A program made the position numbers and the translations under genes. The notes beneath the pieces are model-generated. The model worked only from the letters and a program-made list of their open reading frames with translations, was not told where the DNA came from and did no database searches. A stretch of 64,000 bases of DNA from the IMG/VR virus record IMGVR_UViG_3300033153_015063, positions 178,597-242,596 of that record. The stretch is one strand, 5' to 3'. Shown here in pieces: positions 5,992 to 51,249 of this stretch (position 1 is its first letter; every line of letters starts with the position of its first letter).

Positions 5992-7638
5992 TCAGAAATC
6001 TAGTGCGTTTGAGTATTCATCGGGGTCTCTCTCCGTCCAGTCATCATCTTCTATCCGCCTTTTTGACATCTCCACGTATTCTGGGTTGATATCGAACAAC
6101 AACCAATCTTTCTTCTGACGCTTCGCAGCGATGCCAACAGTTCCCGTTCCACCAAACGGGTCCAGGACTACCCCAGGTTCGAACTCTGCCCCACAACCAC
6201 AATTGGTTTCTCCAAGGAAGATTGAGAAGGGTTTTTTTTCGTCCCACTCGATAAACCCAGTCAGAATGCAGTTCTTAAATTTCTCTTCTGGTGTTGATGT
6301 CGATAGTTTGAGTGGTTTACCGTAGACCCTTTCCATTGGTAGGCCACACTTTGTACAGACCTTTTCGGGGCATCCCGCCTTGACCGGCCTCATTGCAAGG
6401 TCCACCGGGAAGGTTGCGGTGTGAACCCCCTTGAGTGATGGCGTTGGAGGGATATCCCAGACGCATCGCATGTTTCGGCCTATCGGAGACCCACCCATGC
6501 CGTGTAACCCCCTGGAACGCCCCGTTTCACCGTCTCCAGAGACCTGTACGATTGGATTGGATGACGACCAGACATGGGACCCATCAGCCCGTAGAGTTCT
6601 CTGGTTCTCGAACATTTGTTCGAAATGATAGTTGCGACCCGCCCATAGGTTCTTTTTCAGACGGCCTGTTCCCTGACCCAGACGCCCTCTGTCCCTACAT
6701 CGTTGGCATGGATGCAATTGGGCGACCTCGAACAGGTTGCCCTTTCTCTCTTTTGGGGTTAGCTCTTCCACCCACAACAACTCTAATCCTTCCTTGGAGA
6801 TGCCATATCCCTGACAGTAGTGACACTCAACCCACACCCAGTCGGTGCCCTCTACACCATTGATGCCCTTCGGTTTCTTTGCTGTGATGCCAAGCGTTTC
6901 TCTGTTGACCCAGTAAAGTGGTTTGTTAGACCGTGAAAACATGAAGATATACTCGAAATCGTCAGTGAACCTATCTCGATGTGGATCTGGTATTGTGGAA
7001 CGTTTATACCAGATTATAGTGCTACGAAGTATCCACCCTCGATTACACATCTCGATGGCAAAGCGATGGGGGATGTTGCAGAGGCAGTTGTCGGGGAGCT
7101 CTTTCTGTCGGTTCTGATACCCATCCTTTACGTTGTATGACCTGTTGAACTCACCGTCTTTATACTCCAGGTCATACTTTGGTCTCGTTGCGTAGGAGTC
7201 TGCGATATTTACCATGGCCGTCGACCAGAGCTCCATGCCCGGGACCATTCTATCAAATACTGTGCAAAGGTTGTCCACGAACATGGTAAAGGTTGGTTCC
7301 AGCCCGAGTTGGCCGTGCCACGCCCCACAGTGAACACAGATTTTCCCACCACTTTTCTCTCGGTTCACGGATTCAATGGTCTTGGCTGTAGCTCTCGGAG
7401 CTCCGTGTAAGGTGGAACCACTCAAAGTGTATCTGTTGGACTGGTGAATCTCCAACTCTTCTCCCCACTCATGGTCACAATCGGGGTCTCCGCCCCAGAC
7501 CTGCGAAGGTCCATCATAGTCTCGTTTGTTCCAGTAAGGTGGGCTTGTAAAGATGGTTGCTATTGATCTGGATTCGAGACCATCGGCCAGATCAATAGCA
7601 TTCCCTTCAATAACCTGGTTCCTATCTATCTTCTGCAT
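5992..7638 (-). CDS. DNA methyltransferase (N4-C/N6-A, beta class) with zinc-binding insertions
   Basis: TSPPY, HTATFP and VLDPFGGTGT motifs; inserted CHYCQGYG...CQRC and CTKCG...CGCG segments. Confidence 0.9.
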   Translation of the reverse strand: MQKIDRNQVIEGNAIDLADGLESRSIATIFTSPPYWNKRDYDGPSQVWGGDPDCDHEWGEELEIHQSNRYTLSGSTLHGAPRATAKTIESVNREKSGGKICVHCGAWHGQLGLEPTFTMFVDNLCTVFDRMVPGMELWSTAMVNIADSYATRPKYDLEYKDGEFNRSYNVKDGYQNRQKELPDNCLCNIPHRFAIEMCNRGWILRSTIIWYKRSTIPDPHRDRFTDDFEYIFMFSRSNKPLYWVNRETLGITAKKPKGINGVEGTDWVWVECHYCQGYGISKEGLELLWVEELTPKERKGNLFEVAQLHPCQRCRDRGRLGQGTGRLKKNLWAGRNYHFEQMFENQRTLRADGSHVWSSSNPIVQVSGDGETGRSRGLHGMGGSPIGRNMRCVWDIPPTPSLKGVHTATFPVDLAMRPVKAGCPEKVCTKCGLPMERVYGKPLKLSTSTPEEKFKNCILTGFIEWDEKKPFSIFLGETNCGCGAEFEPGVVLDPFGGTGTVGIAAKRQKKDWLLFDINPEYVEMSKRRIEDDDWTERDPDEYSNALDF

Positions 7639-14122: not shown

Positions 14123-14314
14123 TTAATCCTCCATTAATACTTTGAATTGCGGGTTTTCTTTCAGGTAATCTTTGGTATCCTGGAGCCATCCACAACTCCG
14201 GCAGGATAGGAGAGGGAAATAAACCTTCCGGTAACCTTTATTCTTTACCACTCTATTTTCTGGAAGAGCGGTTTTTTCACCACATCCAGGACACTCCACA
14301 GCTAATATTATCAT
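14123..14314 (-). CDS. 63-aa zinc-ribbon protein lying between the two PolB halves
   Basis: CPGCG...CRSCG; ATGA overlap with the upstream stop. Confidence 0.6.
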   Translation of the reverse strand: MIILAVECPGCGEKTALPENRVVKNKGYRKVYFPLLSCRSCGWLQDTKDYLKENPQFKVLMED

Positions 14315-16350
14315 TTTTTGAACACCAACCTACCACCATATTTTTTCTTTATTCCTTCACCACTTTTTTTGACCGAGAAGAATAGCCGTTTGTATATCTT
14401 CTCGAAACCAATACGGAACCGATGTTTTCCAGGGCTTATGTTCAACATCTCAGCGAACTCATCATATGTGGTGTTGAGATATTCGGCAATTTCATATCCC
14501 ATCGAAATTAATTCATCCAGTGTCATATCAGATTTGGCTGGGTCAGTCACGAACAAGCTGTCCGTGTCAGCATATAGCACATTATAACCAAGAGATTCAA
14601 TTTTCTCGGCAGAGTAATTTATGATTGATCTACCTACACTGGTAGTTGCTTCACCACAACGTACGTCCATAAGACGAAATCCGATGAAGCCCAATACTCC
14701 ATAAAATGCATTTGTAAGTGTCTTGAAAGAGAACTGCATCAACTCATATGTATTATAGAGGTCCGTACCAGGAACATTTTCATCTCTGGCATTTTTGTAG
14801 ACCTTTCGCTTCTCAATCATCTCAATAAGGATTGTAGGTATGATACCTTCCTTATCCTTACGAAACATATGGCCTGATGGTGTAGTTATATAGTCATCTG
14901 GTAATGGTTCACCATCAGATATGATAGTGGTTGGGTCGATGTCACATCCTATGATGATGTTGGGATAGAGTGAGTTCAGGTCGACCACCACCACGTTTTC
15001 ATGTAAACCAACAGGTGGTTCGAATACAGTTGCACCTTTGAATTTCTCTTCTCGTTCTTCTCCTCTGACTTGTGTTGGTAGTATCATTTTATTCCACAAT
15101 TTGTGGAAGATGTAGCTATCCAGTAGTTTTGAATTGTAAAAACATTCTTCGATGTCTGTACCTGCTGTGTTGACCACAGCCATATGATAGAACAGGACAT
15201 TCATTTTATCGTTGATTGCTTTCGTAAGTGCCACGTCTATAACATTGTATGCTGCAATGAGCTCACGGTCCCCCTCAAAATACTCCCATCCAAAACCATT
15301 TGGAAACGTCGACAACTTACCAGCTTTCAATTCACTGTTGGCGACAAAGTCGAGTTTTGAACTCTCAGGTAATCCTTTCAATAGTTTTTTCCAGCCACCC
15401 ATCGTGTCGAGGATAGGGATTCCAACGATGGGTCGCCTACCACCTCTGGCGTCGATACGACCAATTTCAGACAGCCGGGCTGGATTTACTCGCATTTCTT
15501 TCATCCGGCCCATGATTACAGGGATATCAAAACCATCAACCCACCATCCGCCGATAATATCGGTCTCCAGTTTATGTAGCATCTTCGGAATGGTCTGAAG
15601 CATACCAACCTCATCGACAGATTGAAAGTATCTGAGTGCCTGGTTATCGTGATGACCATGTGTGTTTATGATACGCACAACATCATTTTTAAGATACTCA
15701 TTCATATCTGGATTGCTTTCCAGATAATCTTTTATGTGTGCAACTACCTTATCATGGTCGATTTCGAGTTGATGGAGTAAATAGTACCTATCATGCTTCG
15801 GGGAATAAAATGAGACACAAAGGAACTCGCCTACTGGGTTTTCTCGGCTTGAGAATCCCTGTCTGTCATCAACCTCGATGTCGATGATAACGTAGTTTGG
15901 TTTGATTTCGGGCCTTTTTTCGTTTTCCCTGAGTGGAACAATCTCATCCTGGTGTATCTCATCACGATCTGGAATCCTGATAAATTCTTTGATGCCGAGA
16001 TCATAGCGACATTTGTCAGTGTAAATTACATCAGCCTGATAGGTCTTTGAGAAGAACTTACGGAGTTGACCCACGTCTCGTGGTAGTCTGGTTTCGATCT
16101 TCCAGGGATAACATCCGTCGATGGCTGGAACAGTTGAACGGGACACCTTGACGACACGTTCCAGATACTCATCAGAGAAATTGGGTTTCTCCGGTGTGTA
16201 GAAGTGGGGAGTTGTGCCCCTGACTCTGATGATACGACGCTTGTTGTCCTCATCACGTCCAAAAAGGATAAGAACCAACCCATCTTTATCCTCGGAGTAG
16301 GTAAGTGAGAATACGAAGAGTGAAATATATCGTTCCTTTGTCATCAACAA
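14311..16350 (-). CDS. polB: family B DNA polymerase, N-terminal subunit (exonuclease plus palm/fingers)
   Basis: ExoI DIEV, ExoII FDIP, ExoIII YNVID; motif A DLNSLYPNII, motif B KTLTNAFYG, motif C YADTDS; ends just after KKKYGG. Confidence 0.95.
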   Translation of the reverse strand: MLMTKERYISLFVFSLTYSEDKDGLVLILFGRDEDNKRRIIRVRGTTPHFYTPEKPNFSDEYLERVVKVSRSTVPAIDGCYPWKIETRLPRDVGQLRKFFSKTYQADVIYTDKCRYDLGIKEFIRIPDRDEIHQDEIVPLRENEKRPEIKPNYVIIDIEVDDRQGFSSRENPVGEFLCVSFYSPKHDRYYLLHQLEIDHDKVVAHIKDYLESNPDMNEYLKNDVVRIINTHGHHDNQALRYFQSVDEVGMLQTIPKMLHKLETDIIGGWWVDGFDIPVIMGRMKEMRVNPARLSEIGRIDARGGRRPIVGIPILDTMGGWKKLLKGLPESSKLDFVANSELKAGKLSTFPNGFGWEYFEGDRELIAAYNVIDVALTKAINDKMNVLFYHMAVVNTAGTDIEECFYNSKLLDSYIFHKLWNKMILPTQVRGEEREEKFKGATVFEPPVGLHENVVVVDLNSLYPNIIIGCDIDPTTIISDGEPLPDDYITTPSGHMFRKDKEGIIPTILIEMIEKRKVYKNARDENVPGTDLYNTYELMQFSFKTLTNAFYGVLGFIGFRLMDVRCGEATTSVGRSIINYSAEKIESLGYNVLYADTDSLFVTDPAKSDMTLDELISMGYEIAEYLNTTYDEFAEMLNISPGKHRFRIGFEKIYKRLFFSVKKSGEGIKKKYGGRLVFKK

Positions 16351-24263: not shown

Positions 24264-25019
24264 CTACACCTTTACAAACTCCTGACCGTTCCAGGCCAGC
24301 CCATGGTTCATCAGGAGACGGGGCTCGTGGACCTCATCACTTCTACCACAGTAAATTAAAATGACTCCTTCTTGTTTGTCGGGTGGTTTTGTTCTCAACT
24401 TGTTGTCATAGATAACTTTCTTTGTATTACGATGTGTTATACACTCCATAGTATAACAATCCTGTCTCTTTATCATATTTAGTGCTTCAATCGACTTCGG
24501 AGTGAGTTTTTTTGGTTTTTTAACTCGTAACAGGCCCCTGAACATCATGCAGCCTGGGCGATGCCCACAATAATCCTTTCCTACAGATGAACCATAGCTC
24601 CATCTCACCTGAACACTTTCTCCTAACTTTTTTCCTACCTCTTCCCATGAGAAAGACGCATACCTTTTAACCTGCTTCAGCCATCTATCTATAGTTATTT
24701 CCCAAGTATAGTGATACTTCACTTTGTCCCGGTTATGGGTTTCCACTTCACTCTTGTAGTATTTCAGTGCATCTACCTCGGTCCCATCTACACCGCCTGT
24801 CAGGAAATAGAATCGAGTCATCTCGTCCCATGAATCCCAGAGTTCCTGAGGCGTCTCTGCGGTACCATAGGTTGATACGAAGCGTTGATAATCCTTATCG
24901 GTGAAGTGGAACCACGTATCTAGTTCCATCTCGTAACGATAGTGCTTCTTACAAAATGGGCACCAGATAGAATTTCTATATTTCTTTGCTTCTTTACCAC
25001 AATCAGGGCAATGAGACAT
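24264..25019 (-). CDS. hypothetical protein with N-terminal zinc ribbon
   Basis: Start moved to ATG 25019 (MSHCPDCGK) to avoid a 200-bp overlap with the MoxR gene. Confidence 0.6.
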   Translation of the reverse strand: MSHCPDCGKEAKKYRNSIWCPFCKKHYRYEMELDTWFHFTDKDYQRFVSTYGTAETPQELWDSWDEMTRFYFLTGGVDGTEVDALKYYKSEVETHNRDKVKYHYTWEITIDRWLKQVKRYASFSWEEVGKKLGESVQVRWSYGSSVGKDYCGHRPGCMMFRGLLRVKKPKKLTPKSIEALNMIKRQDCYTMECITHRNTKKVIYDNKLRTKPPDKQEGVILIYCGRSDEVHEPRLLMNHGLAWNGQEFVKV

Positions 25020-25089
25020 AGGTCCCTTGTGGGGCCGAACCCACAGCCATCCAAGGAGGCTCCACTCCATAGCGGAAGGGAGAGAAAAA

Positions 25090-26616: not shown

Positions 26617-27444
26617 TCAGAAACCGAGAACAAAAGGGTCCCTCCCATCTACATTCAGACCCAAGTTTTCCATGACGTCGATGGCGTCAGTATCTATGTC
26701 GATGCCGATATAGTGCCTGTCGTTGTCTCTGGCCATTCGTAGTGATGTTCCTGATCCTGCGAAGGGGTCGAGAACCAGGTCTCCGGGGTTCGAAAAAGCA
26801 AGGATGATGTCTCTGGCCAGATCATCGGGCATCGTCGCCGAGTGTTGCAATTTAACTTTGTTACCCTCGGTGTTACTGGTGTTGTAGAACCAGACTGTGC
26901 CTCTACACTTCATGTCACCCTGGACCTTTTTCTCGATAGGGACCCGTTTACCTGATGTCAGGGTCTGGGTCCCATGCCAGGTTTCGCCAGCGTGTTTGGC
27001 CGGGACCATCAATAATTCCTTGTGGTAGACTCTTGGCTTGATGGTTCCCTTCCCGGTCTGTTTGACGAAGGCGAGGATATACTCGTGGTCGACCCGGAAA
27101 CGGTCCTGCCACCATGCCCCAGGCCTACCGTGACGGTGATATATGATGTCTGCCCATAGGGACCACCCCAGACTCTCCCAGTCATCCACCAGATATCTGG
27201 TGGTCCCCGTTACCCGACCTTCCTGATGGGAATCCCGCATGACTACCCAGGCCATACCTCGCTCTACTGTGAGGGCATAGAGATTCCTTCCTATATACCT
27301 CAAATATTCCCTTCCCACCTCCCTCTTCCTGATACCGTCGTAGGGTGGACTGGTCACTGTAAGATGGATACTTTCCTTTCCCAATTCGAGAATCTCGGAG
27401 AGCTTGATGCCACTGTCCTTGTGATAGATGATATCCTTTTTCAT
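26617..27444 (-). CDS. DNA methyltransferase (N4-C/N6-A, beta class)
   Basis: TSPPY, HSATMP and VLDPFAGSGT. Confidence 0.9.
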   Translation of the reverse strand: MKKDIIYHKDSGIKLSEILELGKESIHLTVTSPPYDGIRKREVGREYLRYIGRNLYALTVERGMAWVVMRDSHQEGRVTGTTRYLVDDWESLGWSLWADIIYHRHGRPGAWWQDRFRVDHEYILAFVKQTGKGTIKPRVYHKELLMVPAKHAGETWHGTQTLTSGKRVPIEKKVQGDMKCRGTVWFYNTSNTEGNKVKLQHSATMPDDLARDIILAFSNPGDLVLDPFAGSGTSLRMARDNDRHYIGIDIDTDAIDVMENLGLNVDGRDPFVLGF

Positions 27445-27456
27445 ATTTTTTACCTT

Positions 27457-27753
27457 CTATATTTTTCGATGCATCATTTTCTGGTTCTCATCGAACCACT
27501 CTTTGTTCTCGTCTATCCACCGTTCTTTCTCTTTTTTGCCCCTACAATAGATATATTTCTCTGGTGGAAAAGCATGTTGCCCAGGTTGATTTACTATCCT
27601 CATCTCCAGTTTCAATTGGCCAGTGCTGACTATGACAACCTCGATGTTCTTTCCTCTATGGAAAAACCCCAGAATTTCTCCCTTACTGGGTTTCTTCTCC
27701 AGATAAAGGTGACCTCCAGGTTCATTGTCTATAGTCAATTCATATGAAGGCAT
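27457..27753 (-). CDS. hypothetical protein
   Basis: Operon context. Confidence 0.5.
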   Translation of the reverse strand: MPSYELTIDNEPGGHLYLEKKPSKGEILGFFHRGKNIEVVIVSTGQLKLEMRIVNQPGQHAFPPEKYIYCRGKKEKERWIDENKEWFDENQKMMHRKI

Positions 27754-27785: not shown

Positions 27786-28334
27786 CTACTCACCTACTTT
27801 ACCGAGAAAAAGAGAGAAATCCTGGACCTCACGAATGGCCAACGGAACGACCTTGTCTTTGTTCACACCACAATCGAGTAGGATAATTGGCCGCTGCCCC
27901 TTCTTTTGATGTCCATATTTCTCACATACCTTTATCAATACCCTTGAAGGGAGATGGGGTTTGGCTTTGTAGGAGTCATTGAACCATGAGATAGTGAATT
28001 TGACGCCGAACTCCTCGACTACGATTCGTTCATCTTTATGGAACCTATCGGTGTAGTCTTTCATCCGTTCACTCAGAGTAAGTTCTTCGGAGAAGGTAAC
28101 TATGTCTCCATCGAACTCGTCCTCGTCCTCTTCCTCGACATCCCACTCGTCTATCTCTGTCAAGTTCTTGAGTTGATGGGCGATCTCTATGCCGAGCTTT
28201 CGATTCACAGACGTATCTTCGATGGGTTTTCCATCATCTGTGCATGGCCCGAGTACCTTCCATCTTCCTCCATTCCTGTGAAATTTGAAGCACGATGAAG
28301 CCCTGTTGTTAGAAAGACGAATAATTTTGTCCAT
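27786..28334 (-). CDS. hypothetical protein
   Basis: Start moved to ATG 28334 (MDKIIRL) to avoid overlap with the membrane-protein gene. Confidence 0.5.
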   Translation of the reverse strand: MDKIIRLSNNRASSCFKFHRNGGRWKVLGPCTDDGKPIEDTSVNRKLGIEIAHQLKNLTEIDEWDVEEEDEDEFDGDIVTFSEELTLSERMKDYTDRFHKDERIVVEEFGVKFTISWFNDSYKAKPHLPSRVLIKVCEKYGHQKKGQRPIILLDCGVNKDKVVPLAIREVQDFSLFLGKVGE

Positions 28335-28398
28335 GAAAGTGGGATGGCCTGGAGAGTTTTTAAAGATTGAGAGAGAAGAAAGGGTTGGTGGATCTACA

Positions 28399-28809
28399 TC
28401 AGTAGTATTTTTCCCACAGAGCCTCTCCAACCCACAAAACAAGCGGGGCGGAGAAGGAAGCCCACAGAACCACTCTGCGGAAGTAAAAATCGTCTTCGAT
28501 GGTGATTGACCTCTCCAATACAAAGTCGCTCATCCCATACCCGTTGTACATGAAGGAGAGTGCTACCACAAAGAAGACTGTCATCAGGATGAAGTTGGCG
28601 ATGGGTTGACTGTTATCTTCAAAGGTCTCGAAGAGATAGAAGTACACGACGCCCATGATGAGTCCCATTACAAGACTGTAAAGGGCATACTCCTCGAATG
28701 CTTTCGGTGTGTAACCTGCGAGAGTATACGGTGCTATGATGAACCAGAAAAGAGTGAGGGCGAGAGCTACTATTGCCGTTTTCACAGCCTGTCGCGGTAC
28801 TTCAGTCAT
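28399..28809 (-). CDS. four-pass membrane protein
   Basis: Four hydrophobic segments; ATG at 28809 lies 24 nt after TTTAAATA. Confidence 0.7.
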   Translation of the reverse strand: MTEVPRQAVKTAIVALALTLFWFIIAPYTLAGYTPKAFEEYALYSLVMGLIMGVVYFYLFETFEDNSQPIANFILMTVFFVVALSFMYNGYGMSDFVLERSITIEDDFYFRRVVLWASFSAPLVLWVGEALWEKYY

Positions 28810-28853
28810 CGGCCAACGCAATAGCTTGTGGAGTATTTAAACCTACCGAACAT

Positions 28854-29309
28854 CTAATGTTCAGTCTTATGGATGACGATGAAATTATCTTCTTTCAATA
28901 TCACTTCGAGAACGGGACGGACCTGGTCCCAATCAAGACCACCGCAACCGCATCCTGGTCGTGGGATAGCAACAGTAGGCCGTCGTGGTCGTGGAAGATG
29001 CATCATCCATTCACCCCTGAGCTCCATGCAACTGGCCCTTATCAGTTCCAGGGTTGCCTTGTCACGCCAGTGTTTTTTCACTGGAAAAGAAAAAATGGTT
29101 TTACCTTTCCAAGCCCCTATCGGGGTAACATCACAACCCATACGAATCGCCTTACCAAGGTTGATATCGACGCCAGGGACCCGGTTCACAGCCTCGGCTG
29201 CACACCCTCTACCCATCACAGCTCGTCCATCACTCTTCGTGGTCTTGTTGGTTGTGATACAAAGCCAGTCGGCGTCAATCTCCCATAGGTCTTCGTTTTT
29301 CTCTATCAA
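28854..29309 (-). CDS. macrodomain protein (DarG/Poa1-like ADP-ribose hydrolase)
   Basis: TTN...GRAVMGRGCA, FPVKKHWR and IPRPGCGCGGLDWDQV are macrodomain motifs. Confidence 0.85.
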   Translation of the reverse strand: MIEKNEDLWEIDADWLCITTNKTTKSDGRAVMGRGCAAEAVNRVPGVDINLGKAIRMGCDVTPIGAWKGKTIFSFPVKKHWRDKATLELIRASCMELRGEWMMHLPRPRRPTVAIPRPGCGCGGLDWDQVRPVLEVILKEDNFIVIHKTEH

Positions 29310-29462
29310 TCATAATCCTCAGTGAAACGCAAAGCCTTCGGGACGGATAAGGTCGTGTAGTTGCGGTTGCATTTTTCTATCAATTATAATCCTCAGTGAA
29401 ACAGGTTGAGGTTAAAATTTCCGGTACATGGTACTACTGTTGCATTTTCTATCAATTATAAT
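29292..29462 (-). CRISPR. CRISPR mini-array: 3 repeats, 2 spacers, no adjacent cas genes
   Basis: Full 37-nt repeat at 29366..29402 (plus: GTTGCATTTTTCTATCAATTATAATCCTCAGTGAAAC); 31/37-match copy at 29292..29328; truncated copy at 29439..29462; unique spacers of 37 and 36 nt; AT-rich leader-like DNA on the right. Confidence 0.75.
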
Positions 29463-29478
29463 TCGAAAATATAATATA

Positions 29479-30177
29479 TTATCCACGTTTCCACCATCGT
29501 TTCTTCTTCTTCGGTTCTCCTTTCTTCTTCATTGTATTCTTTTCCAGGATATTACTCATGTCATAAAGATAATTATCCCCCCTCGTCATAAACTCGAATG
29601 ACATACAGACAAAATCACTCTTCAACCCTCCGTCTTTTGTCGATCCAAGGATATATGAAACCATTCCAATCGCATATCGGCTAGTATATGATACCTCTTC
29701 TGGGTTGAACTCAAGCAATATCAACCAGTCGCCGATTCTGAAGTTACGGTCATTCTTACGCAGCTCGAAGCTCTTTTCTTTTTCCCAGACTGCGTTGAAA
29801 TGTTTCGGCCACGTCTTTATCTCATGCCCTCGGACTGGTATCGTGAATCCTGGAACATTTTCTCTTATGTCGGAAAGGGTCTCCCCATCAACGTTACCTT
29901 CTGCATCAAACAGTCCGATAGACATCGCAAACTCCATGTTTTTCTGGACGTGGATAATTGCAGTAAGGACATCTTTACGATACCGTTCTTCGGCGGTCTC
30001 CTGAGCCTCTTTCCACACCTCCATTTCATCTTCTCTCTTTTTTATTTCATCCTCCATCTCCTTGAATTTATCTGGCCCCATGATGTTCAATAGTTCATCC
30101 TTCAGACCAGTATCATCGTCTTTGAATATAGTAACTATACCACATCCAGGGGTTTTACATCGTGGCATTTTACACAT
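29479..30177 (-). CDS. ASCH/PUA-like (DUF3850-type) domain protein
   Basis: HEIKTWPKHFNAV...KSFELRKNDRNFRIGDWLILLEF. Confidence 0.7.
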   Translation of the reverse strand: MCKMPRCKTPGCGIVTIFKDDDTGLKDELLNIMGPDKFKEMEDEIKKREDEMEVWKEAQETAEERYRKDVLTAIIHVQKNMEFAMSIGLFDAEGNVDGETLSDIRENVPGFTIPVRGHEIKTWPKHFNAVWEKEKSFELRKNDRNFRIGDWLILLEFNPEEVSYTSRYAIGMVSYILGSTKDGGLKSDFVCMSFEFMTRGDNYLYDMSNILEKNTMKKKGEPKKKKRWWKRG

Positions 30178-30584
30178 TCAATGAAGTAAAAACCAGTTCC
30201 AGGGGCCGTGACATGCCGGTATTTACCACCACAGGAACAAGTGTTTAGGGATCGTTCCATCAACCCTAACCCTTCCATCTTCATCCTGTTATCGTACCAG
30301 AAGTTTCTGACGTCGTCTGGGACATCCAGTGTCGAAATACCATGAACCCGTTCTCCAGACGCCTCCGCCCCATAATAATACATGACCTTCAAACCAAAGA
30401 AAGCCAGTTTTAAAGTTAATATAGGATGGAAAATGAACTTGAGAAAACCACGTATGTCAAGCCATTTTCTGGTATTTCCAGGCCAGAGTTTGTCGATGAG
30501 GTCGGCCTTTTGTTGTGTTAAGCCGCAATGAGTACATTTATTGTTCTCAACTACCTTCCCACAACGAAAACAATTTTCCGGCAT
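30135..30584 (-). CDS. hypothetical protein with two zinc ribbons
   Basis: CFRCG...CTHCG and CSCGG...CVKC. Confidence 0.55.
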   Translation of the reverse strand: MPENCFRCGKVVENNKCTHCGLTQQKADLIDKLWPGNTRKWLDIRGFLKFIFHPILTLKLAFFGLKVMYYYGAEASGERVHGISTLDVPDDVRNFWYDNRMKMEGLGLMERSLNTCSCGGKYRHVTAPGTGFYFIECVKCHDVKPLDVV

Positions 30585-30593
30585 ATTATCCCT

Positions 30594-32453
30594 TCATTCT
30601 CCCTGAAACTCTCGTAGACATTTCTTGCCTTCCTCAGTCATCTTGAACTCGAAGCGGGCATACTCGAAGTGGTTGCCTTTCCCGGTGAATGTCCCCTCGG
30701 TAATGTTGGATGGGACGGCCATAGTCATCGCCAACCGTCCAAGGAAATCAGAGACGTAGTAAGGGTTATTGTTCTCAAAGAGCTCCTTCAGGAAGGCGGT
30801 CTGGGCCGGTGTGTTGGTGTTCTTCATCGACTCTGGACGTTCTTTCTTTTTCTCATCGAGGTGGACCTTGACTTCAGTCACTCTATCAAACTCGGAAAGT
30901 GCCTTCTTGGTCCGTTCTATCGCTTCTTTTTGACCAGGCCAGTCAGGTTCAGGTTCGTCTTTAACCATTTCTTTCTCCTCCTTCTCTACGATGTCAGATG
31001 ACTCACATTCGTTCTTGGTGATGATTGGGATCGGTTCCCACTTTGAAGTGTATTCAGTAAACAATACTTCATCCAGATTGTGTGTTTCGCAGTCCTTCAG
31101 TATCCTTTCTCTTATCCGGTGATTGGCGTTCAGTTTATCATAATCCTTTTTTTCCGTCAGACTTTCCATATAATCTTTGTCTTCAACGGACTCGTAGAGA
31201 CGTTGGGCCAACGACACCCACCATTCGTTTGTGACATAATCCAGATGGTCACAGGATAATTCGTACAATTGCATCTCTCGATACCAATCACAGGCAATGG
31301 CACGAAGCCAGAATCTCCAGTATGACCAGACTGGCTTCGTGATACCACCATAGAAAACCTTAGCTGTGGCATAGGAGAGAAGACCTGAATCGGTCCTGAT
31401 GATGGACCCTGGGAAGTCATTGACCATCGTTTTAATGATATCGTGACACCACTCCAGAACACCATTCATTTCTTCCTTGGTCATGGGTGGCATCGGTTCA
31501 GGGTCGAAGTGGTCATATATCTCAAACTGCTCAGCGATGATGTTTGGAATGATGTTCTTGTGTCTACTCATGTAGATGTGCATGTTGTTGGAGACCTGGT
31601 AGAACTTACCAACCTCAAGACCGAGACGGGATGCGACGAGTTGCTGGAAGATGGTGGGATCGAACAGGTCAAAAGGTAAACCCCAGATGGCGTCGTTGGA
31701 CCTGATGGTGCAATGCATATCAACCCGACCCTCTCGAACCTCGAACTGCCATGACATTGTGCAAGGCACGTACTGGCGGGAGTGGTCATGCATCGGGTTC
31801 CAGAAAGAGATAATGGCGTGGCGGGTTGTGGGGTCCCGCTGCAGCTTCTCGATACAGACCTCCAGTTGGTCCACCTCCCATGTCCTGACTGGTACCTCTT
31901 TACGAGATACGTGACAAATCTTGGGTTTCACTTGTTGTATCTGATGGGCGTTGTAAGAGTGGACGTTGTTCATCATCCAGCTCTCCTCGTAGTCATATTT
32001 GTGTGTCCAGTCGAGTTTGATGGGTAGGTCCCGGCCCGGCCAGTGTCTGATACGGTCACCATAGGTATAAGGACAGAGCTCTTTCTTCTCGTCTTTATCT
32101 GGTGGTTCTTGGTGATATTCGTCGTAAGGAATAGGACTCTGACGCCACTTCTCAATCAAGAGCCAGCGTTTGTGGTAGGGGTGGAAGTGATGGATGAATC
32201 CTGGGTTGAGACCGAGAAGGTAGTCCATAACCTCGACCAGGCAGACGCCGACCTGTTGACGGACGTTTGGGATGCCGCACCAGTTCTTCGTCGGATCTTC
32301 GAGAACCAGATGGAGAGAAGGGGCCTCTCGCATGGTCATTACTTTCTCCTTGTTCGGACCTTCAGGACGTTTGATTTTCAGTCCGTTGTTGGAGATGTAG
32401 TCGATGGTATCTCTTACTACTTCAGTAGAAGTATTACCGACAATACTCTTCAT
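30594..32453 (-). CDS. thymidylate synthase-family enzyme, probably a dCMP hydroxymethylase/methylase, with long C-terminal extension
   Basis: YTYGDRI, DPTTRHAII, catalytic VPC, RSNDAIWGLPFD (Asp at the E. coli ThyA Asn177 position) and NMHIY. Confidence 0.8.
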   Translation of the reverse strand: MKSIVGNTSTEVVRDTIDYISNNGLKIKRPEGPNKEKVMTMREAPSLHLVLEDPTKNWCGIPNVRQQVGVCLVEVMDYLLGLNPGFIHHFHPYHKRWLLIEKWRQSPIPYDEYHQEPPDKDEKKELCPYTYGDRIRHWPGRDLPIKLDWTHKYDYEESWMMNNVHSYNAHQIQQVKPKICHVSRKEVPVRTWEVDQLEVCIEKLQRDPTTRHAIISFWNPMHDHSRQYVPCTMSWQFEVREGRVDMHCTIRSNDAIWGLPFDLFDPTIFQQLVASRLGLEVGKFYQVSNNMHIYMSRHKNIIPNIIAEQFEIYDHFDPEPMPPMTKEEMNGVLEWCHDIIKTMVNDFPGSIIRTDSGLLSYATAKVFYGGITKPVWSYWRFWLRAIACDWYREMQLYELSCDHLDYVTNEWWVSLAQRLYESVEDKDYMESLTEKKDYDKLNANHRIRERILKDCETHNLDEVLFTEYTSKWEPIPIITKNECESSDIVEKEEKEMVKDEPEPDWPGQKEAIERTKKALSEFDRVTEVKVHLDEKKKERPESMKNTNTPAQTAFLKELFENNNPYYVSDFLGRLAMTMAVPSNITEGTFTGKGNHFEYARFEFKMTEEGKKCLREFQGE

Positions 32454-32490
32454 ATGAGAGAGTAGGAGAAGGATGAGTTTTTAAAGAGTT

Positions 32491-32970
32491 CTATTTCCCA
32501 TGCCTCTCTTTAAGTTCACGTTGCATAGCCGGAAACGTTCGGTTGAGACGATAAGCTTCATCAGCCCTTTTCCACGCCGTTTCTGGATTGGCATAACCAC
32601 TCTTTGCCTGATAGACCTCACTGAACTGCCCAAGACCAGTATTGGACTTACTACTCAATGGATTTCGCTGATACGCTTTCCATTTTCCATTACCTTCACG
32701 AACAAGTTTATATTCCAGGAAATTGGTCTCATCGAGTTTGACAATCATACCTGCATACAACCCATCTTCTACGACAGGCCAATCTGTGATTGATGGTAGA
32801 TTCAGGGGAAGGCTATCGTGTATTGTTATACCACCAACCATCCTCTCCAGGAACTCTCCCTCCGTCAACTGAGGACTGTCTCCCACAGGCCCCTTGTAAA
32901 CCGTAGCTCCCTCTTCGTAGACGTATTTGTAGCGGTTACCTGAACCTGGAGGGATTTCGACGACGGTCAT
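32491..32970 (-). CDS. shared-leader family member 2
   Basis: MTVVEIPPGSGNRYKYVYEEGATVYKGPVGDSPQLTEGEFLERM. Confidence 0.85.
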   Translation of the reverse strand: MTVVEIPPGSGNRYKYVYEEGATVYKGPVGDSPQLTEGEFLERMVGGITIHDSLPLNLPSITDWPVVEDGLYAGMIVKLDETNFLEYKLVREGNGKWKAYQRNPLSSKSNTGLGQFSEVYQAKSGYANPETAWKRADEAYRLNRTFPAMQRELKERHGK

Positions 32971-33046
32971 GGTATCAATGTGGGATGGGCTGAGGAGTAT
33001 TTAAAAGGTTCTAACGTTTTACGTTTTGTATTTCATTACTGTCGAC

Positions 33047-35111: not shown

Positions 35112-35852
35112 TTAACCGATGATGTGTATTTCGCCACCGTAAACGGCATACTCGAAGCTTCTACCATCCTTTGCTAACACTATGTAATGGGGATAGTAAC
35201 GGCGGCCTCTTCCCATGTAGAAATCCTTGAGCCTGATACCCTCGATGTTGTTGAGTACCCTTATTTCTCGGCCAAAGAAAGGATTGTTCTTCCGTTCCCT
35301 TCCGGTAGGCGTCTGCCACTGGCTCATCAACCACTTACTGACCTTCTGGTTCTGTTCTTTTGTCAGGGGGATACCCCCCTCCATCTCTACCCATGTTTGT
35401 AGAGTTCCCAAGTGTACATCCTCTCCACTGTTCTTCCGTCGAGTAAGAAGATTAATTTCCTGTTCTGTGAGATGGTCCTTACCCCAATCTATCTCCTTTC
35501 TTCGGGATTTTTTCAGGCTCCCCTCGTTGTACCATGTGCCATGCACCTTGTAGGCCCACCACCCACTGACTTTGAGTTTTTTATCATCGTCGTACCAGCC
35601 CTCCCGCCATTCCTTGAGTGTCACAGGATGATAACCCCAGTTGGGGCTATCAGGGAGGGTGAGATAGTCACCGAGCTCAAACTTATTCTTCGGGACTTTC
35701 CCTTTCCCACCTTCCATCCCCTTCAAGAACTCCTCCTCCGAAAGCCCAGGACTATTCCCTACAGGCCCCTTGTAGACTGTGTCCTGGGTGCCCTTGTCGT
35801 AATCATACCTGTAGCGGTTCCCTGAGCCCTCAGGAATCTCAACGGTGGTCAT
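35112..35852 (-). CDS. shared-leader family member 3
   Basis: MTTVEIPEGSGNRYRYDY...VYKGPVGNSPGLSEEEFL. Confidence 0.85.
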   Translation of the reverse strand: MTTVEIPEGSGNRYRYDYDKGTQDTVYKGPVGNSPGLSEEEFLKGMEGGKGKVPKNKFELGDYLTLPDSPNWGYHPVTLKEWREGWYDDDKKLKVSGWWAYKVHGTWYNEGSLKKSRRKEIDWGKDHLTEQEINLLTRRKNSGEDVHLGTLQTWVEMEGGIPLTKEQNQKVSKWLMSQWQTPTGRERKNNPFFGREIRVLNNIEGIRLKDFYMGRGRRYYPHYIVLAKDGRSFEYAVYGGEIHIIG

Positions 35853-35903
35853 CAGGGGAGGAAAGGGCTGAGGAGTATTTAAAGATTCGGAGGGAGGATC
35901 GGA

Positions 35904-36647
35904 TTACTCGGTCCTTTTCAGGACCTTTTTACCGAGTGGCCCGATATCATAATAGACTGATTTGCCACGTTTAGATTTGATGATATAACCGTCGTCAGCC
36001 CATCCACCCAGTATCATGCCACCCTGACGCCCACCTGGAAGCATACCCGCTTTTTTCAGCTCGGTCTGGGCAACAGATCCCTCTTTCTCCAGATGGATGA
36101 TAAGGTTGTGTTTTTTCGAACCATCTCTCACGGCACCAGGTCCGACCAGGTCATCTTCGACCTTTTCCTTCCAGTTGGGGACGTCCTTGTTCTGGACTAC
36201 AATTTTCTTTAGTGCGGTCTTGTAGCGTTTGGCCCTACTTCCATACCCGTAGTTTACCTTCACGAACTCGTCGATGAACTGATTTTTCCAGGTGTCAGGC
36301 TTGAGTCTGGTTGTGGTTGGGTCGTCGGCCTGGATGAACTTACCCTCACGCCCTTTGAACACCACACCATCAATACTCTTACCTGTCAGACCTTCGAGTT
36401 GTTTTTGGAGTTCAGCGACCTCATGGTAGGTCTTTTCGTGTTCACCGGCCGGTTCAGTGACCAACTCTGGAGTATGGTCATCAATGTCGATGATAGTTGG
36501 AGTTTTGAACCTCTCCAGGAACTCCTCCTCCGAAAGCTCAGGTGCTTCTCCCACAGGCCCCTTGTATTGTGTCTTTCCTTCCTCGTACTCGTACCTGTAT
36601 CTGTTACCGGACCCTGGTGGAATCTTGTTGGACTGGCGGCGGTTCAC
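35904..36647 (-). CDS. shared-leader family member 4 (C-terminal winged-helix payload)
   Basis: IPPGSGNRYRYEYEEGKTQYKGPVGEAPELSEEEFLE; GTG start overlaps the stop of member 5; MarR-like C-terminus. Confidence 0.85.
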   Translation of the reverse strand: MNRRQSNKIPPGSGNRYRYEYEEGKTQYKGPVGEAPELSEEEFLERFKTPTIIDIDDHTPELVTEPAGEHEKTYHEVAELQKQLEGLTGKSIDGVVFKGREGKFIQADDPTTTRLKPDTWKNQFIDEFVKVNYGYGSRAKRYKTALKKIVVQNKDVPNWKEKVEDDLVGPGAVRDGSKKHNLIIHLEKEGSVAQTELKKAGMLPGGRQGGMILGGWADDGYIIKSKRGKSVYYDIGPLGKKVLKRTE

Positions 36648-37153
36648 TTTTTTTGTGGTATATGGAAGAAATCCTCCGTTTCCTTCACATTTTCCATCTT
36701 ACGGAGCGATTTTTGAAGAGCTGTACTGGCCTGAAACTTTTCGACCACGATACCATTCTCATAATCTGATATTATTTGACGTAAAGCATCCTGATATCTT
36801 CCCTGACCTCGATATAATTCATCGAGCTCCGTGTTCCAGATTGCTATCAGGTTGATATTATCTATTCCGACCTGTTCTTTGAATTTTTTACTATCGCCAA
36901 CGTACTCAAAACCAGCGATATGGCCGATTCGTTTTCGGCCATCATAGATACCATATATCGCTGTTTTATACTCAGACTTCAAACGACGCACCCTGGTTGT
37001 ATATGAGACGTTTTTACCAGCCATCCTCTCCATGAACTCAGCCTCTCCCAGCTCAGGTGCTTCTCCCACAGGTCCTTTGTACTGTGTCTTGCCATTCTCG
37101 TACTCATAGCGGTATCTGTTGCCACTTCCAGGAGGGATTTCAACTATGGACAT
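36644..37153 (-). CDS. shared-leader family member 5 (GNAT-like payload)
   Basis: Leader, then ELDELYRGQGRYQDAL resembling the GNAT acetyl-CoA-binding motif A. Confidence 0.8.
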   Translation of the reverse strand: MSIVEIPPGSGNRYRYEYENGKTQYKGPVGEAPELGEAEFMERMAGKNVSYTTRVRRLKSEYKTAIYGIYDGRKRIGHIAGFEYVGDSKKFKEQVGIDNINLIAIWNTELDELYRGQGRYQDALRQIISDYENGIVVEKFQASTALQKSLRKMENVKETEDFFHIPQKK

Positions 37154-37190
37154 TGGAGAGTGATAGGGGAGGGAGGATAAGAAGATTGTG

Positions 37191-37243
37191 GTAGGATGGT
37201 GGGATGGAGTAGGATGGTGGGATGGAGTAGGGAGGTGGGAGGA
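37191..37243 (+). repeat. 18-bp tandem repeat (GTAGGATGGTGGGATGGA x2 plus a degenerate third copy)
   Basis: Read directly at 37191..37208, 37209..37226 and 37227..37243, in a divergent intergenic gap. Confidence 0.8.
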
Positions 37244-37281
37244 GAGTGACGATGGTGATGGGGCAGTCTTTATAAAGACGG

Positions 37282-39372
37282 TTGGTTGTTTTCAATTACG
37301 TGCCCAGACCCAATATCAAACACTTCATTGCGAAGGAAAACACTAACCTCAACGATTCATTTATTCCTTGGTCGGAGATTGCACCTTATTTTGTCTTCGA
37401 AAAACCACGTAAGATACAAGAAGTATTATTGCGGGTCATCATATCAGCAATAGAGAAAGGTAGGAAAGAAATCGTTCTATCAGCACCAACGGGGATAGGT
37501 AAGTCTGTAATTGCTGTCACAATTGCAAAGTGGATAGAGGCTCAGGGTAAAAAATCTCTCTTTCACATCCCCAGAAAAGCACTTGTAGACCAATACCAGG
37601 AAGTATTTCCTGAGTATCCACTCATCAAAGGCAACAACGAATACAGATGTATATTATCACACAATGAACTGAAGAAAGCTGGATTCGAGCCTGGTTACTA
37701 CACCAAGGATAAAGCACCTTGTTCAGTTACCAAGTATTTTTGTAAATACAAACCACGTCGAAGGGGAGAAAAAGATGGGTTGTTACCAGCACTCGCCACG
37801 TCGGCCAAGAGGGGTGAAATGGTGTGTGGCAATGACCCGTGCCCATTCTGGGAGGAGAAGATAAAGTGTCTCAACAGTAAAATCATCTTTGCATCTTCAA
37901 TGTTTGCTTACATGGAGAGACAGACCAGTGACGATTTTGGTGTCGTCGAATTTGGCGTCTATGATGAGGGTGACCACGTCGAGACCGATATAATGTCCGT
38001 TGAGACAGTGAAAATCACAGAAAAAGAACTCGAAGAGTTCATGGGCCATCCAATGCAGATTCCCAATAACATCAAGGATATAAAAGAATGGATACCGGTT
38101 GTAGAAAAACTTCGGGAGGGTGCTTTAGCCAGAGGTATTTATCTGAGTGGTAAGATAAAGGATATGGAAATTGGTACAAAGAATAAAGGGTTGATATTAA
38201 GAGAAAAAATGAGATTGAGATTCTCTGAGGAAAGATTAGAAAAGTATGATGATATTATCAGCTACATCAAAAAGTGGCCTGATACTATGGTGAGTGCCAT
38301 TGGTGAGGATGAGATTAAGGGTGAGAAGGTTGGGTATGTTGAGTTCAAACCAGCTTTTGTTCGTCAGTTTGCAGGTAAACATCTCCGAAGGAGTTCAACC
38401 AGGCTTTTTATGTCAGCGACCATCCTCCACCCGGTTCTGTTCGGCCATAACATCGGAATGTATGATTTCCTGTATATCGAGGTCCCAGAAAGCCCATTTC
38501 CTACCAAAAATAGGGGCATAGAACTCCATAATGTGGGACGGGTAAACAACAATACCATCCGGGAGTTAATGCCCAAAATAATGGCAGAAATCAAGCAAAT
38601 CGTGGCCGATAATCAGGGTAGGTCTGGACTCATCATCCCCGTATCTCACAGGATGAGGCTTGAAATCTACCGTGCATTGATGAAAGATATCTCGTTCAGT
38701 AAAATCCAGGAAAATGGGGTAGAGTGCCCATATTGTGGTCAGAGGTTGTGGCAGTTGTTCCCGCATGTAGAAGACATCCATAAAACAAACACTTATCAAT
38801 TTCTACGTGAGTTTGGAAGGGACATTGAATTGTTCTCACCGGCAGCGTCTATCATCACCAATGGTTCACATACACTGGAGCGTAAGAAAGCTATGGCCCT
38901 TTTCTCGCAGGGTTTAATCTGCCCGGAGTGTGGCGACTATGTTCACGGTGGCGGTTCCGTACTTCATTGCCGTAGATGTAGAATACATTACAAAAAGAGT
39001 ATGTTGAAACCGATGCCCAGGTTGTGGATAAGCACCTATCCTAAGGAGGGATTCGACGGTAAGGATGATGTTGTGAGATATATTATCATCCCGAAAATGT
39101 TCTATGCCTATCTTGGAGATCCGTTGGTTCAGAAACGTAAGGAAGTACAACCAACATCTTATCTTATCGACGCACTCCGTTCTCTCATCCAGGCATCGGG
39201 ACGTGGAACCAGACATGAGGATGACTATTGTAACACTCATGTTCTCGACAGTGGTATCAATACTCTGTTGGGTATGATTAGACGGTCTGAGGGTAAGCTC
39301 AGGAACGATTATCTACCCAATGCCAGTATTATACCCAGATGGTGGGAAAAGGCCATGACAAAGAAAAAATGA
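37282..39372 (+). CDS. XPD/DinG/Rad3-family SF2 helicase with Fe-S and zinc-ribbon insertions
   Basis: SAPTGIGKS, KGNNEYRC, YDEGDH, MSATI and QASGRGTR; the start may be GTG 37300 given the TATA at 37269. Confidence 0.85.
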   Translation: MVVFNYVPRPNIKHFIAKENTNLNDSFIPWSEIAPYFVFEKPRKIQEVLLRVIISAIEKGRKEIVLSAPTGIGKSVIAVTIAKWIEAQGKKSLFHIPRKALVDQYQEVFPEYPLIKGNNEYRCILSHNELKKAGFEPGYYTKDKAPCSVTKYFCKYKPRRRGEKDGLLPALATSAKRGEMVCGNDPCPFWEEKIKCLNSKIIFASSMFAYMERQTSDDFGVVEFGVYDEGDHVETDIMSVETVKITEKELEEFMGHPMQIPNNIKDIKEWIPVVEKLREGALARGIYLSGKIKDMEIGTKNKGLILREKMRLRFSEERLEKYDDIISYIKKWPDTMVSAIGEDEIKGEKVGYVEFKPAFVRQFAGKHLRRSSTRLFMSATILHPVLFGHNIGMYDFLYIEVPESPFPTKNRGIELHNVGRVNNNTIRELMPKIMAEIKQIVADNQGRSGLIIPVSHRMRLEIYRALMKDISFSKIQENGVECPYCGQRLWQLFPHVEDIHKTNTYQFLREFGRDIELFSPAASIITNGSHTLERKKAMALFSQGLICPECGDYVHGGGSVLHCRRCRIHYKKSMLKPMPRLWISTYPKEGFDGKDDVVRYIIIPKMFYAYLGDPLVQKRKEVQPTSYLIDALRSLIQASGRGTRHEDDYCNTHVLDSGINTLLGMIRRSEGKLRNDYLPNASIIPRWWEKAMTKKK

Positions 39373-50211: not shown

Positions 50212-51249
50212 TCACAGATCATCGAGCGATTGTTCACGTTCCTTTGCTTCGCCGCCCTCCAACCCGCCAGTCGTCCCGGTGTCAGAGGCGGCGGATTTGA
50301 TGGTCTCCTTGATGGGTTCGAGGACGTCCCCCTTGACCACGATGGGGTGGATGAGCCTACCGTCGATGATACGCTCTTCGGTTGGTTCTCCCTCGCCTGG
50401 GTTCTCGTTCTCACTTTTTCTGAGCCGACCGACGACCTGGACGATGGAGCCCTGTGGATAGACGACCTGCTCAGGAGACAGAAAGATGGTTATCTCCCGC
50501 TGGGAATGGTCTCCCTTCTTTGCCGCATCGACTTTCTGGCTGTCATCCACCAGAGTGATGATACCCCAGGGGTTGCCCTTCTTGTACCCACCGGATCGAC
50601 GCCCGACGATGCCCATCACGAGCTTGTAGTCACCGGCTTTACCCTTCGAGAGGTGGTCATCGAAATCGGCCAGCTTGACCGTCGGGAAGAGGTTGTTGAG
50701 AACGGATGCGATGGCAGGAGTTCCGTCGATTTCTTCAGAATCCTTGAACTTGGTGTTGTCCGAGCTGGAGAGGTTGTAGATGCCGTTCTTCTTTTCACCC
50801 CACAGGTTGACATCGTACCATGCACACCGCTTCAAGCCGCCGATCAAACCCGTCTGGTCGTTCCACAGAGTGACCTCGGCGAACATCAGCTCATCGTCCT
50901 TCCCGGCCTTCTCCTTGACCAACATGAAGACGTCGGTAGCCTTCCAGGGCTTACCTTCTTTGATACCTTTCCTGACGCTCTTCCAGTCGATGACCTGACC
51001 GATGAATGGTTTGGTCCCTCGCTGCACTTCGAGAAGCATCTCACCCTTCAGCGAAAGCCAGGCCATCTCATGGCGTTGTTCACCATCAAGGCTGCTCAAG
51101 AAGTCAGAGCTGTAAACTTCCTTGTACTTGCTCTTGATGTCTTTCATGTCGAGTCCGGTCTCTGTCTGGAACTCCTTCAGATTCTGGACGATGTCCTTTG
51201 GGACCTTCAGTTGCTTTTCATCTGCCATAGGGGATACCTCATCGTTCAA
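50212..51249 (-). CDS. RPA/SSB-like OB-fold protein
   Basis: N-terminal helical domain plus two OB-like repeats (AEVTLWNDQ; ITIFL...VQVVGRL). Confidence 0.65.
   Translation of the reverse strand: MNDEVSPMADEKQLKVPKDIVQNLKEFQTETGLDMKDIKSKYKEVYSSDFLSSLDGEQRHEMAWLSLKGEMLLEVQRGTKPFIGQVIDWKSVRKGIKEGKPWKATDVFMLVKEKAGKDDELMFAEVTLWNDQTGLIGGLKRCAWYDVNLWGEKKNGIYNLSSSDNTKFKDSEEIDGTPAIASVLNNLFPTVKLADFDDHLSKGKAGDYKLVMGIVGRRSGGYKKGNPWGIITLVDDSQKVDAAKKGDHSQREITIFLSPEQVVYPQGSIVQVVGRLRKSENENPGEGEPTEERIIDGRLIHPIVVKGDVLEPIKETIKSAASDTGTTGGLEGGEAKEREQSLDDL

Follow-up and report, generated by a model that had tools for sequence, protein, structure and literature searches.

A short CRISPR array, here called array D, lies in a 64-kb stretch of viral DNA (the window), which is positions 178597-242596 of the 242,596-bp virus record IMGVR_UViG_3300033153_015063 in IMG/VR (the whole record is referred to as G000). 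Array D is most probably one of three satellite arrays of a virus-encoded, type V-F-like CRISPR system and feeds that system's own effector. The same genome carries a gene for a Cas12f-like effector that abuts an array with the identical repeat and is preceded by a candidate trans-activating CRISPR RNA (tracrRNA). In the preliminary description, made from the window, array D was taken for a Cas-less array that hijacks or decoys a host system. The statement that there is no cas operon holds within the 64 kb, but not for the genome, where the effector gene is found outside the window (Table 1), and the proposal of a host system gives way to the virus's own effector, identical-repeat array and candidate tracrRNA.

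The usual reading of orphan arrays in viruses is that they parasitise the CRISPR systems of the host. Array D illustrates that a virus-encoded system can include an array even where 64 kb of sequence contain no cas gene, and that whole-genome context is needed before an array is called Cas-less. The Cas12f-like lineage involved is very rare, it has a conserved His-His-Asp site, and its tracrRNA candidate is backed by co-variation.

Four arrays in one virus genome

The virus record has a 64-bp terminal repeat, and its completeness is estimated by CheckV at 100. The 37-nt repeat occurs in about 17 copies, in one orientation throughout, distributed over four arrays (A to D, Table 1). The largest, array B, adjoins the effector gene, of which the complete genome holds a single copy. 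Each array lies no more than 21 nt downstream of the stop codon of a co-directional gene, or overlaps it, and arrays C and D extend into the start of the following gene. No match to Cas1, Cas2 or Cas4 (PF01867, PF09827, PF01930) was obtained in the complete virus genome with searches in which the positive controls worked.

Anatomy of array D

Direct reading of the sequence and a repeat finder both give three copies of the 37-nt repeat and two unique spacers at window 29292-29474, in agreement with the copies and spacers first reported. The repeats are spaced 74 and 72 nt apart, the spacers have lengths typical of CRISPR, and the chance expectation for the full 37-nt repeat, estimated from shuffled window sequence, is 0.00. 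No family was matched in an Rfam scan of the array.

The array is read on the minus strand, so that R3 is the first repeat to be transcribed and R1 the terminal one. The middle repeat is perfect and the outer two are degenerate on their outward-facing sides, as had been noted. In R3 the minus-strand 3' 24 nt (29439-29462) read ATTATAATTGATAGAAAATGCAAC; one A has been lost from an unpaired A-run, both boxes that would pair with the tracrRNA are kept, and the 5' part has been exchanged for AT-rich sequence. R1 retains its 5' 31 nt but lacks the final 6 nt (the TGCAAC box), so no guide follows it. The next gene has its TTG start codon (29309) inside R1, together with a GAGGA Shine-Dalgarno-like site. 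Loss of the 5' part of R3 and of the 3' end of R1 is what a minus-strand type V array predicts, and the observation that both spacers retain functional repeat handles stands.

On the minus-strand reading, the AT-rich sequence to the right of the array is upstream of it, as was suspected. The stop codon of a gene for a DUF3850/ASCH-like protein lies 4 nt before R3, and a terminator scan around the array found no terminator-like site between the two, so transcription of the array by read-through from this gene is possible. The accompanying scan for sigma-70-like promoters found none above chance around array D.

Table 1. Positions of the arrays, their parts and other features of the virus genome. 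Match counts for R1, R2 and R3 refer to the plus strand.
Feature	Position	Strand	Remarks
Array A	G000 24771-25025		same 37-nt repeat
Array B	G000 28004-28443		largest array; begins 1 nt past the stop codon of the Cas12f-like gene
Array C	G000 38393-38568		same 37-nt repeat; one truncated handle
Array D	G000 207888-208070		the array in the window
Effector P0001	G000 28448-30166	-	573 aa; outside the window
R3, proximal repeat	window 29439..29474	-	first transcribed; plus-strand first 24 nt match, one T missing, remainder diverged
Spacer D2	window 29403..29438	-	36 nt; guide AGTAGTACCATGTACCGGAAATTTTAACCTCAACCT
R2	window 29366..29402	-	identical to the genome-wide consensus, GTTTCACTGAGGATTATAATTGATAGAAAAATGCAAC (minus strand)
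Spacer D1	window 29329..29365	-	37 nt; guide CGCAACTACACGACCTTATCCGTCCCGAAGGCTTTGC
R1, terminal repeat	window 29292..29328	-	31/37 nt match; minus-strand 5' 31 nt kept
DUF3850/ASCH-like gene	window 29479..30177	-	putative RNA-binding protein; upstream of array D
Macro-domain or phosphatase-like gene	window 28854..29309	-	downstream of array D; first codons within R1
Handle and candidate anti-repeat boxes, own genome			handle TTGATAGA ... TGCAAC; boxes TCTATCAA and GTTGTA
Handle and candidate anti-repeat boxes, L019			handle GGATTGAT(A)GGAA ... TGCAAC; boxes TTCCATCAATCC and GTTGCA
Handle and candidate anti-repeat boxes, L020			handle GGATGTTT ... AGCGAC; boxes AAACATCC and GTCGCT
Handle and candidate anti-repeat boxes, L021			handle GGGATGCTA ... 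TGCGAC; boxes TAGCATCCC and GTCGCA
Spacer B2, array B	G000 28167-28199		unit 28167-28219
Near-self protospacer of B2	window 51034-51066	+	30/33 positions, E 1.5e-6; within gene 50212..51249 (-)
TATA-like sites, examples	G000 30450, 25956, 144473, 164368, 232895		last = window 54299
N6/N4 DNA methyltransferase gene	window 5992-7635	-	
N6/N4 DNA methyltransferase gene	window 26617-27444	-	
N6/N4 DNA methyltransferase gene	G000 26623-27498		
N6/N4 DNA methyltransferase gene	G000 32137-32997		
N6/N4 DNA methyltransferase gene	G000 35816-37084		
N6/N4 DNA methyltransferase gene	G000 37097-38386		
TROVE/Ro60-like gene	G000 172573-174225	-	
CCA-adding/poly(A)-polymerase-like gene	G000 51972-53297	+	
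Class II ribonucleotide reductase gene	window 43288-46041	-	

The Cas12f-like effector and its RuvC site

The effector has the Pfam Cas12f1-like TNB domain (PF07282) and matches the PADLOC models for Cas12u3 and Cas12f. When the family profile was compared with PDB entries, the matches were to OsCas12f (2e-41), AsCas12f (3e-40) and Un1Cas12f (2e-30), and the match to solved Cas12f proteins extends from the WED/REC region through RuvC-III. The identity to these proteins is only 13-15%. A Foldseek search with an AlphaFold model of the protein returned Cas12f for all of the top 15 hits (E about 1e-18); lower scores were obtained for Cas12k, CasX, Cas12m, CasLambda, CasPhi, TnpB and Fanzor.

The family is small. 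An exhaustive HMMER search of 1.84 billion representatives gave five clusters; apart from the viral effector itself, the only members with E <1e-30 are P0002-P0005, at 30-65% identity. The sole member with an NCBI record is KKN51593.1, which is P0004 and comes from the LCGC14 marine sediment metagenome, which is labelled "hypothetical protein"; its accessions are not mentioned in the searchable literature.

The active site of the family is unusual. In an alignment of the five members with six TnpB-like outgroups, the column of the RuvC-I Asp (G-I-D-x-G) holds His in 5/5 members, in the motif G-[VIL]-H-G-G-I-Y (His308 in the viral effector), and the column of the RuvC-II Glu (E-D-L) likewise holds His in 5/5, in H-D-[FW]-T (His416). 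In the same columns the outgroups have Asp in 5/6 and Glu in 6/6. The RuvC-III Asp (N-A-D-x-N-A, Asp521) is kept, as are both CxxC pairs. Profile alignment to AsCas12f and OsCas12f places His308 and His416 on the GIDLG/GVDMG and MEDLT motifs.

Conserved RuvC substitutions can mark active sites that are rearranged instead of dead (PMC10691335). Independent inactivation with retention of binding-based interference is also well documented, for V-C, V-M, V-K, TldR and dCas12f (PMC12669027, PMC11656645 and PMC13472631). The passages of these papers that were consulted contain no description of a double Asp-to-His and Glu-to-His pattern; RIIIr-4 has Asp-to-His at RuvC-III only (PMC10691335, PMC13472631, PMC12669027). 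The His-His-Asp effector may bind without cutting, or may work by way of a rearranged active site. That the open reading frame is intact, and that His-His-Asp and the zinc ribbon are kept over five members down to 30% identity, points to selection, not decay.

Related loci and the functional part of the repeat

Three loci that encode relatives of the effector (L019, L020 and L021) have an array directly 3' of the effector gene, on the same strand. The units closest to the effector consist of full 36-nt repeats and 36-37-nt spacers, and many of the distal units are shortened to the 3' 17-20 nt of the repeat. This layout, together with the truncated units, indicates that the arrays are read in the direction of the effector gene, which in the virus genome is the minus strand. 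Three things thus bear out the orientation first assigned to array D: the direction of the effector gene, the layout of the homologous loci, and the units that are truncated. A plus-strand reading, in which the repeat ends in GTGAAAC, was favoured initially and was ruled out on the same three grounds.

The part of the repeat under selection is its 3' end, ATTGATAGAAAAATGCAAC. Selection on this handle explains the anatomy of array D: the handle of R3 stands before D2, the perfect R2 stands before D1, and R1, which has no spacer to serve, is eroded.

Arrays of this family change by whole units between samples, with no known adaptation module. For example, of two LCGC14-type element assemblies, L023 exceeds L021 by two full repeat-spacer units (145 nt) at the effector-proximal end; the stretches L021:11833-12800 and L023:5819-6950 are otherwise identical, save for 19 nt by which L023 runs on at the end.

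A candidate tracrRNA

The repeat alone is unstructured when folded in both orientations. This spoke against a self-processed hairpin, as in the repeats of Cas12a or CasPhi, and the idea was rejected; dependence on a tracrRNA fits the lack of structure. Immediately upstream of the effector gene, after a TTTATAAAC box, there is a non-coding region of about 240-290 nt, which in the virus genome lies at about G000 30181-30420. It closes with a GGGGGG-loop-CCCCCC hairpin, and 14 nt separate this from the effector start codon. The region is conserved in 5/5 loci. Between the virus genome and L019 its DNA identity is 74%, with effector proteins that are 62-65% identical in amino acids. In the consensus fold predicted by RNAalifold there are 35 pairs, and compensatory changes support 11 of these.

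Within this non-coding RNA, two boxes complement the repeat over its 3' 20 nt, and in the four loci compared in Table 1 the boxes change together with the handles. When four of the non-coding RNAs were tested, the most stable duplex for each repeat was that with the RNA of its own locus. The upstream RNA is therefore a candidate tracrRNA with a predicted two-part anti-repeat, an architecture that Cas12f guide RNAs have. Rfam scans of the effector locus gave no match for it, and a tRNA search prompted by a T-arm-like element within it found no tRNA.

A solitary repeat handle followed by a guide-length stretch occurs beside the tracrRNA region in two loci (L019:1113-1157 and L021:9604-9658). The one in L019 is placed between the tracrRNA hairpin and the effector start codon and resembles a natural fused guide.

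Spacers and their targets

Of the 13 spacers in the four arrays, compared with the virus's own genome at up to 28% mismatches, one has a significant second match. This is spacer B2 of array B, whose near-self protospacer lies in a window gene with no known function (Table 1). The B2 unit has suffered a deletion of about 21 nt in which the 3' 17-nt handle of the repeat was lost, apparently with about 4 nt of the spacer, and B2 is therefore probably not usable as a guide. It might be a self-targeting guide that has been disabled. Mismatches and a lost handle in a spacer directed at the virus's own lineage fit a system that does harm to its targets, and fit competition between viruses as set out in PMC11656645. 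Exact 24-mers of B2 gave no match in IMG/VR, array B spacers had no target among GenBank phages (blastn), and the related loci that were fetched contained no spacer target. The system is probably aimed at relatives that compete with the virus, or at other mobile elements.

Proposed mechanism and alternative explanations

Transcription of array D would run along the minus strand and would probably reach the array by read-through of the gene whose end lies 4 nt upstream; an additional promoter could be supplied by the AT-rich sequence that stands in place of the 5' half of R3. The tracrRNA would pair with the 3' part of R3 and R2 (TTGATAGA ... TGCAAC). Each handle together with the 36-37-nt spacer after it would form a guide, D2 and then D1, to be loaded into the Cas12f-like protein; R1 would be a dead terminal repeat. 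The loaded effector would either silence DNA by binding alone, in the manner of Cas12m, Cas12k, TldR and dCas12f, or would cut by way of a rearranged metal site. Of all the steps, this one is the least certain.

Several observations weigh against assigning array D to a working virus-encoded system. The distance between the array and the effector gene is about 63 kb if measured round the circle and about 180 kb if measured linearly, and such dispersal is unusual. Adaptation genes for the gain of spacers are absent. Two of the three carboxylates of the canonical Asp-Glu-Asp triad are replaced, which makes interference by cleavage doubtful. The AlphaFold model of the effector is of moderate confidence (predicted local distance difference test score, pLDDT, 74.7; predicted template modelling score, pTM, 0.54; alignment of 11 sequences). 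Transcription and processing of the array, and the tracrRNA as well, are all deduced from comparison. Finally, the search for spacer targets that the preliminary description proposed gave nothing for D1 or D2 in the virus's own genome (at up to 28% mismatches), in GenBank phages (blastn), in IMG/VR (exact 24-mers), in JGI metagenomes (exact 22-mers) or in any related locus; diverged protospacers would escape the two exact searches. Expression, targets, and the choice between cutting and binding only are the main uncertainties.

Some of these same features would be expected of a decaying relic, in which array fragments dispersed by recombination or duplication accompany an inactivated effector and there is no guidance at all. 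The RuvC-I Asp and RuvC-II Glu are replaced, the adaptation module is absent, the B2 unit and a handle of array C are truncated, and no targets were found. Decay is unlikely, however, given an effector reading frame that is intact and a site and zinc ribbon conserved as described above, an R2 that is a perfect copy of the consensus, two intact handles in array D, and the gain or loss of whole units between samples in one family member. A variant of this explanation, that array D is a local triplication of the start of the Macro gene, draws on the overlap of R1 with that start; it has to contend with the presence of the repeat at four loci and not at the Macro gene start alone.

Borrowing of a host effector by a Cas-less viral mini-array for use against competing viruses, as in the portogloboviruses of Saccharolobus, would account for an array with two spacers only and no cas gene in the window, and for a virus that lacks Cas1, Cas2 and Cas4. 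The match of B2 to its own lineage at 30/33 positions follows the pattern of inter-virus mini-arrays in PMC11656645, and the host is possibly unsampled. This explanation is nevertheless very improbable: the Cas12f-like effector abuts an identical-repeat array in the same genome, a matching tracrRNA candidate is there too, an array with this repeat is absent from 185,579 species-representative genomes, and in related viruses the repeat co-varies with a virus-encoded non-coding RNA, not with a host system. It is more improbable still that the transcribed repeats act as an RNA anti-CRISPR (Racr), sequestering Cas proteins of the host or of a rival virus with the spacers irrelevant. Solitary or few viral repeat units can act in this way (PMC11656645), and truncated units and solitary handles do occur in the effector's family. 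A decoy of this kind would leave the spacers without a role, yet each is unique and their length (36-37 nt) is regular for CRISPR; the conserved part of the repeat is precisely the handle through which it would pair with the tracrRNA of the virus itself, and no cellular system with the repeat was found in the species-representative genomes.

A broader picture can be put forward tentatively. The system may represent an undescribed, five-member viral offshoot of Cas12f with a conserved His-His-Asp site, a long tracrRNA and arrays scattered in a jumbo genome, possibly that of an archaeal virus. It may serve as a natural, programmable DNA-binding silencer in conflicts between viruses or between virus and host, or as a nuclease with a new metal site, and its units may be added without a viral Cas1-Cas2. 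A natural binder would add a viral example to RNA-guided silencing, and an effector that cuts would represent a new catalytic arrangement in a protein of 573 aa.

Comparison with known systems

Type V-F, that of Cas12f (Cas14), is among the closest known systems. Both have a miniature effector with RuvC and a zinc-ribbon TNB domain, for which the best profile and fold matches are to Cas12f, and the NADxN motif of RuvC-III is present in the viral effector. The unstructured repeat is predicted to pair through its 3' part, in two segments, with a long structured non-coding RNA beside the effector gene, and the array adjoins that gene on the same strand in the virus genome and in L019, L020 and L021. 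In contrast to type V-F, the viral effector has His for the RuvC-I Asp and the RuvC-II Glu, it is only 13-15% identical to solved members, and its virus lacks Cas1, Cas2 and Cas4. Here the system is also housed in a 243-kb virus with four dispersed arrays, and many array units keep only the 3' handle. The adaptation module (cas1, cas2, cas4) is present in V-F1 and absent in some V-F variants. Assignment to subtype V-F is thus favoured by fold, by adjacency of the array and, provisionally, by the tracrRNA, and is opposed by the catalytic triad and the adaptation module.

The mini-arrays of the portogloboviruses SPV1 and SPV2 (reviewed in PMC11656645) are similar in having one or two spacers and no adjacent cas gene, and in that one or more spacers of the repeat family appear to be directed against the lineage of the virus itself. 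They differ in that the present repeat belongs to a virus-encoded effector with a candidate tracrRNA, and no host array with it was found in the species-representative genomes.

Effectors with altered RuvC positions (Cas12m, Cas12k, TldR, dCas12f and the rearranged TnpB clades) resemble the viral protein in that substitutions are accompanied by what appears to be retention of the fold and of RNA guidance, and some dCas12f genes adjoin CRISPR arrays (PMC10691335, PMC13472631 and PMC12669027). Unlike these relatives, the viral effector has an intact zinc ribbon and RuvC-III motif and is predicted to work with a separate tracrRNA.

CasPhi (Cas12j) and CasLambda of huge phages share with the present system a single small Cas12 effector in a virus of more than 200 kb that lacks an adaptation module (see also PMC12141684). 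A use against competitors or the host is presumed for both. Their fold matches to the viral effector are weaker (CasLambda 2e-7 to 8e-9 and CasPhi 3e-7, versus 1e-18 for Cas12f). CasPhi and CasLambda reportedly process their own CRISPR RNA, need no tracrRNA and have an intact Asp-Glu-Asp RuvC site, in contrast with the His-His-Asp site and the predicted tracrRNA of the viral effector.

The host

The repeat had been expected to identify the host. A search with its 26 specified bases gave 0 matches in the species-representative genomes. The 18-nt handle gave 27 single matches there, in unrelated taxa and at about the number estimated by chance for an 18-mer, and none of these genomes has a locus with two or more copies of the repeat. 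An exact scan of IMG/VR for the repeat revealed no arrays. The host may be unsampled, which leaves use of a host system a small probability, but array D can now be explained without it.

Other features of the genome bear on the host. TATA-like hexamers peak 26-30 nt before predicted start codons, with 65 occurrences versus about 5 in most other 5-nt bins. Shine-Dalgarno-like sites, counted over the whole genome, peak at -11 to -15. The sequence TTTATAAAC occurs 29-33 nt before four gene starts and also precedes the tracrRNA candidate. Such a pattern is typical of archaeal leaderless transcription. The family B DNA polymerase (window 14311-16347, minus strand) has three metagenomic relatives at 57-58% identity, and the named cellular proteins closest to it are replicative PolB enzymes of haloarchaea, at about 30% identity. 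An archaeal host is suggested by the architecture of the promoters and by the relationships of the polymerase; an archaeal virus of 243 kb would be unusually large. A haloarchaeal host is not supported, the proteome being only mildly acidic (median isoelectric point 5.7). No relatives of the virus were found in IMG/VR with the protein that contains the B2 target and the polymerase as queries.

Other features of the virus genome

At least six genes for N6/N4 DNA methyltransferases are present, several of which adjoin arrays. This set suggests that the virus genome is heavily DNA-modified. A 619-aa protein (window 30594-32453, minus strand) has a thymidylate-synthase-like core (residues 129-300) with long N- and C-terminal extras, and might be a nucleotide-modifying enzyme instead of a plain ThyA. 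An 18-nt tandem repeat, GTAGGATGGTGGGATGGA, detected by TRF in 3.6 copies at window 37191-37257, is unrelated to the CRISPR repeat. Among the other products of the virus are a TROVE/Ro60-like protein that has a vWA domain, an HD-domain enzyme of the CCA-adding or poly(A)-polymerase-like kind, a class II ribonucleotide reductase, gyrase A/B-like subunits and topoisomerase I.

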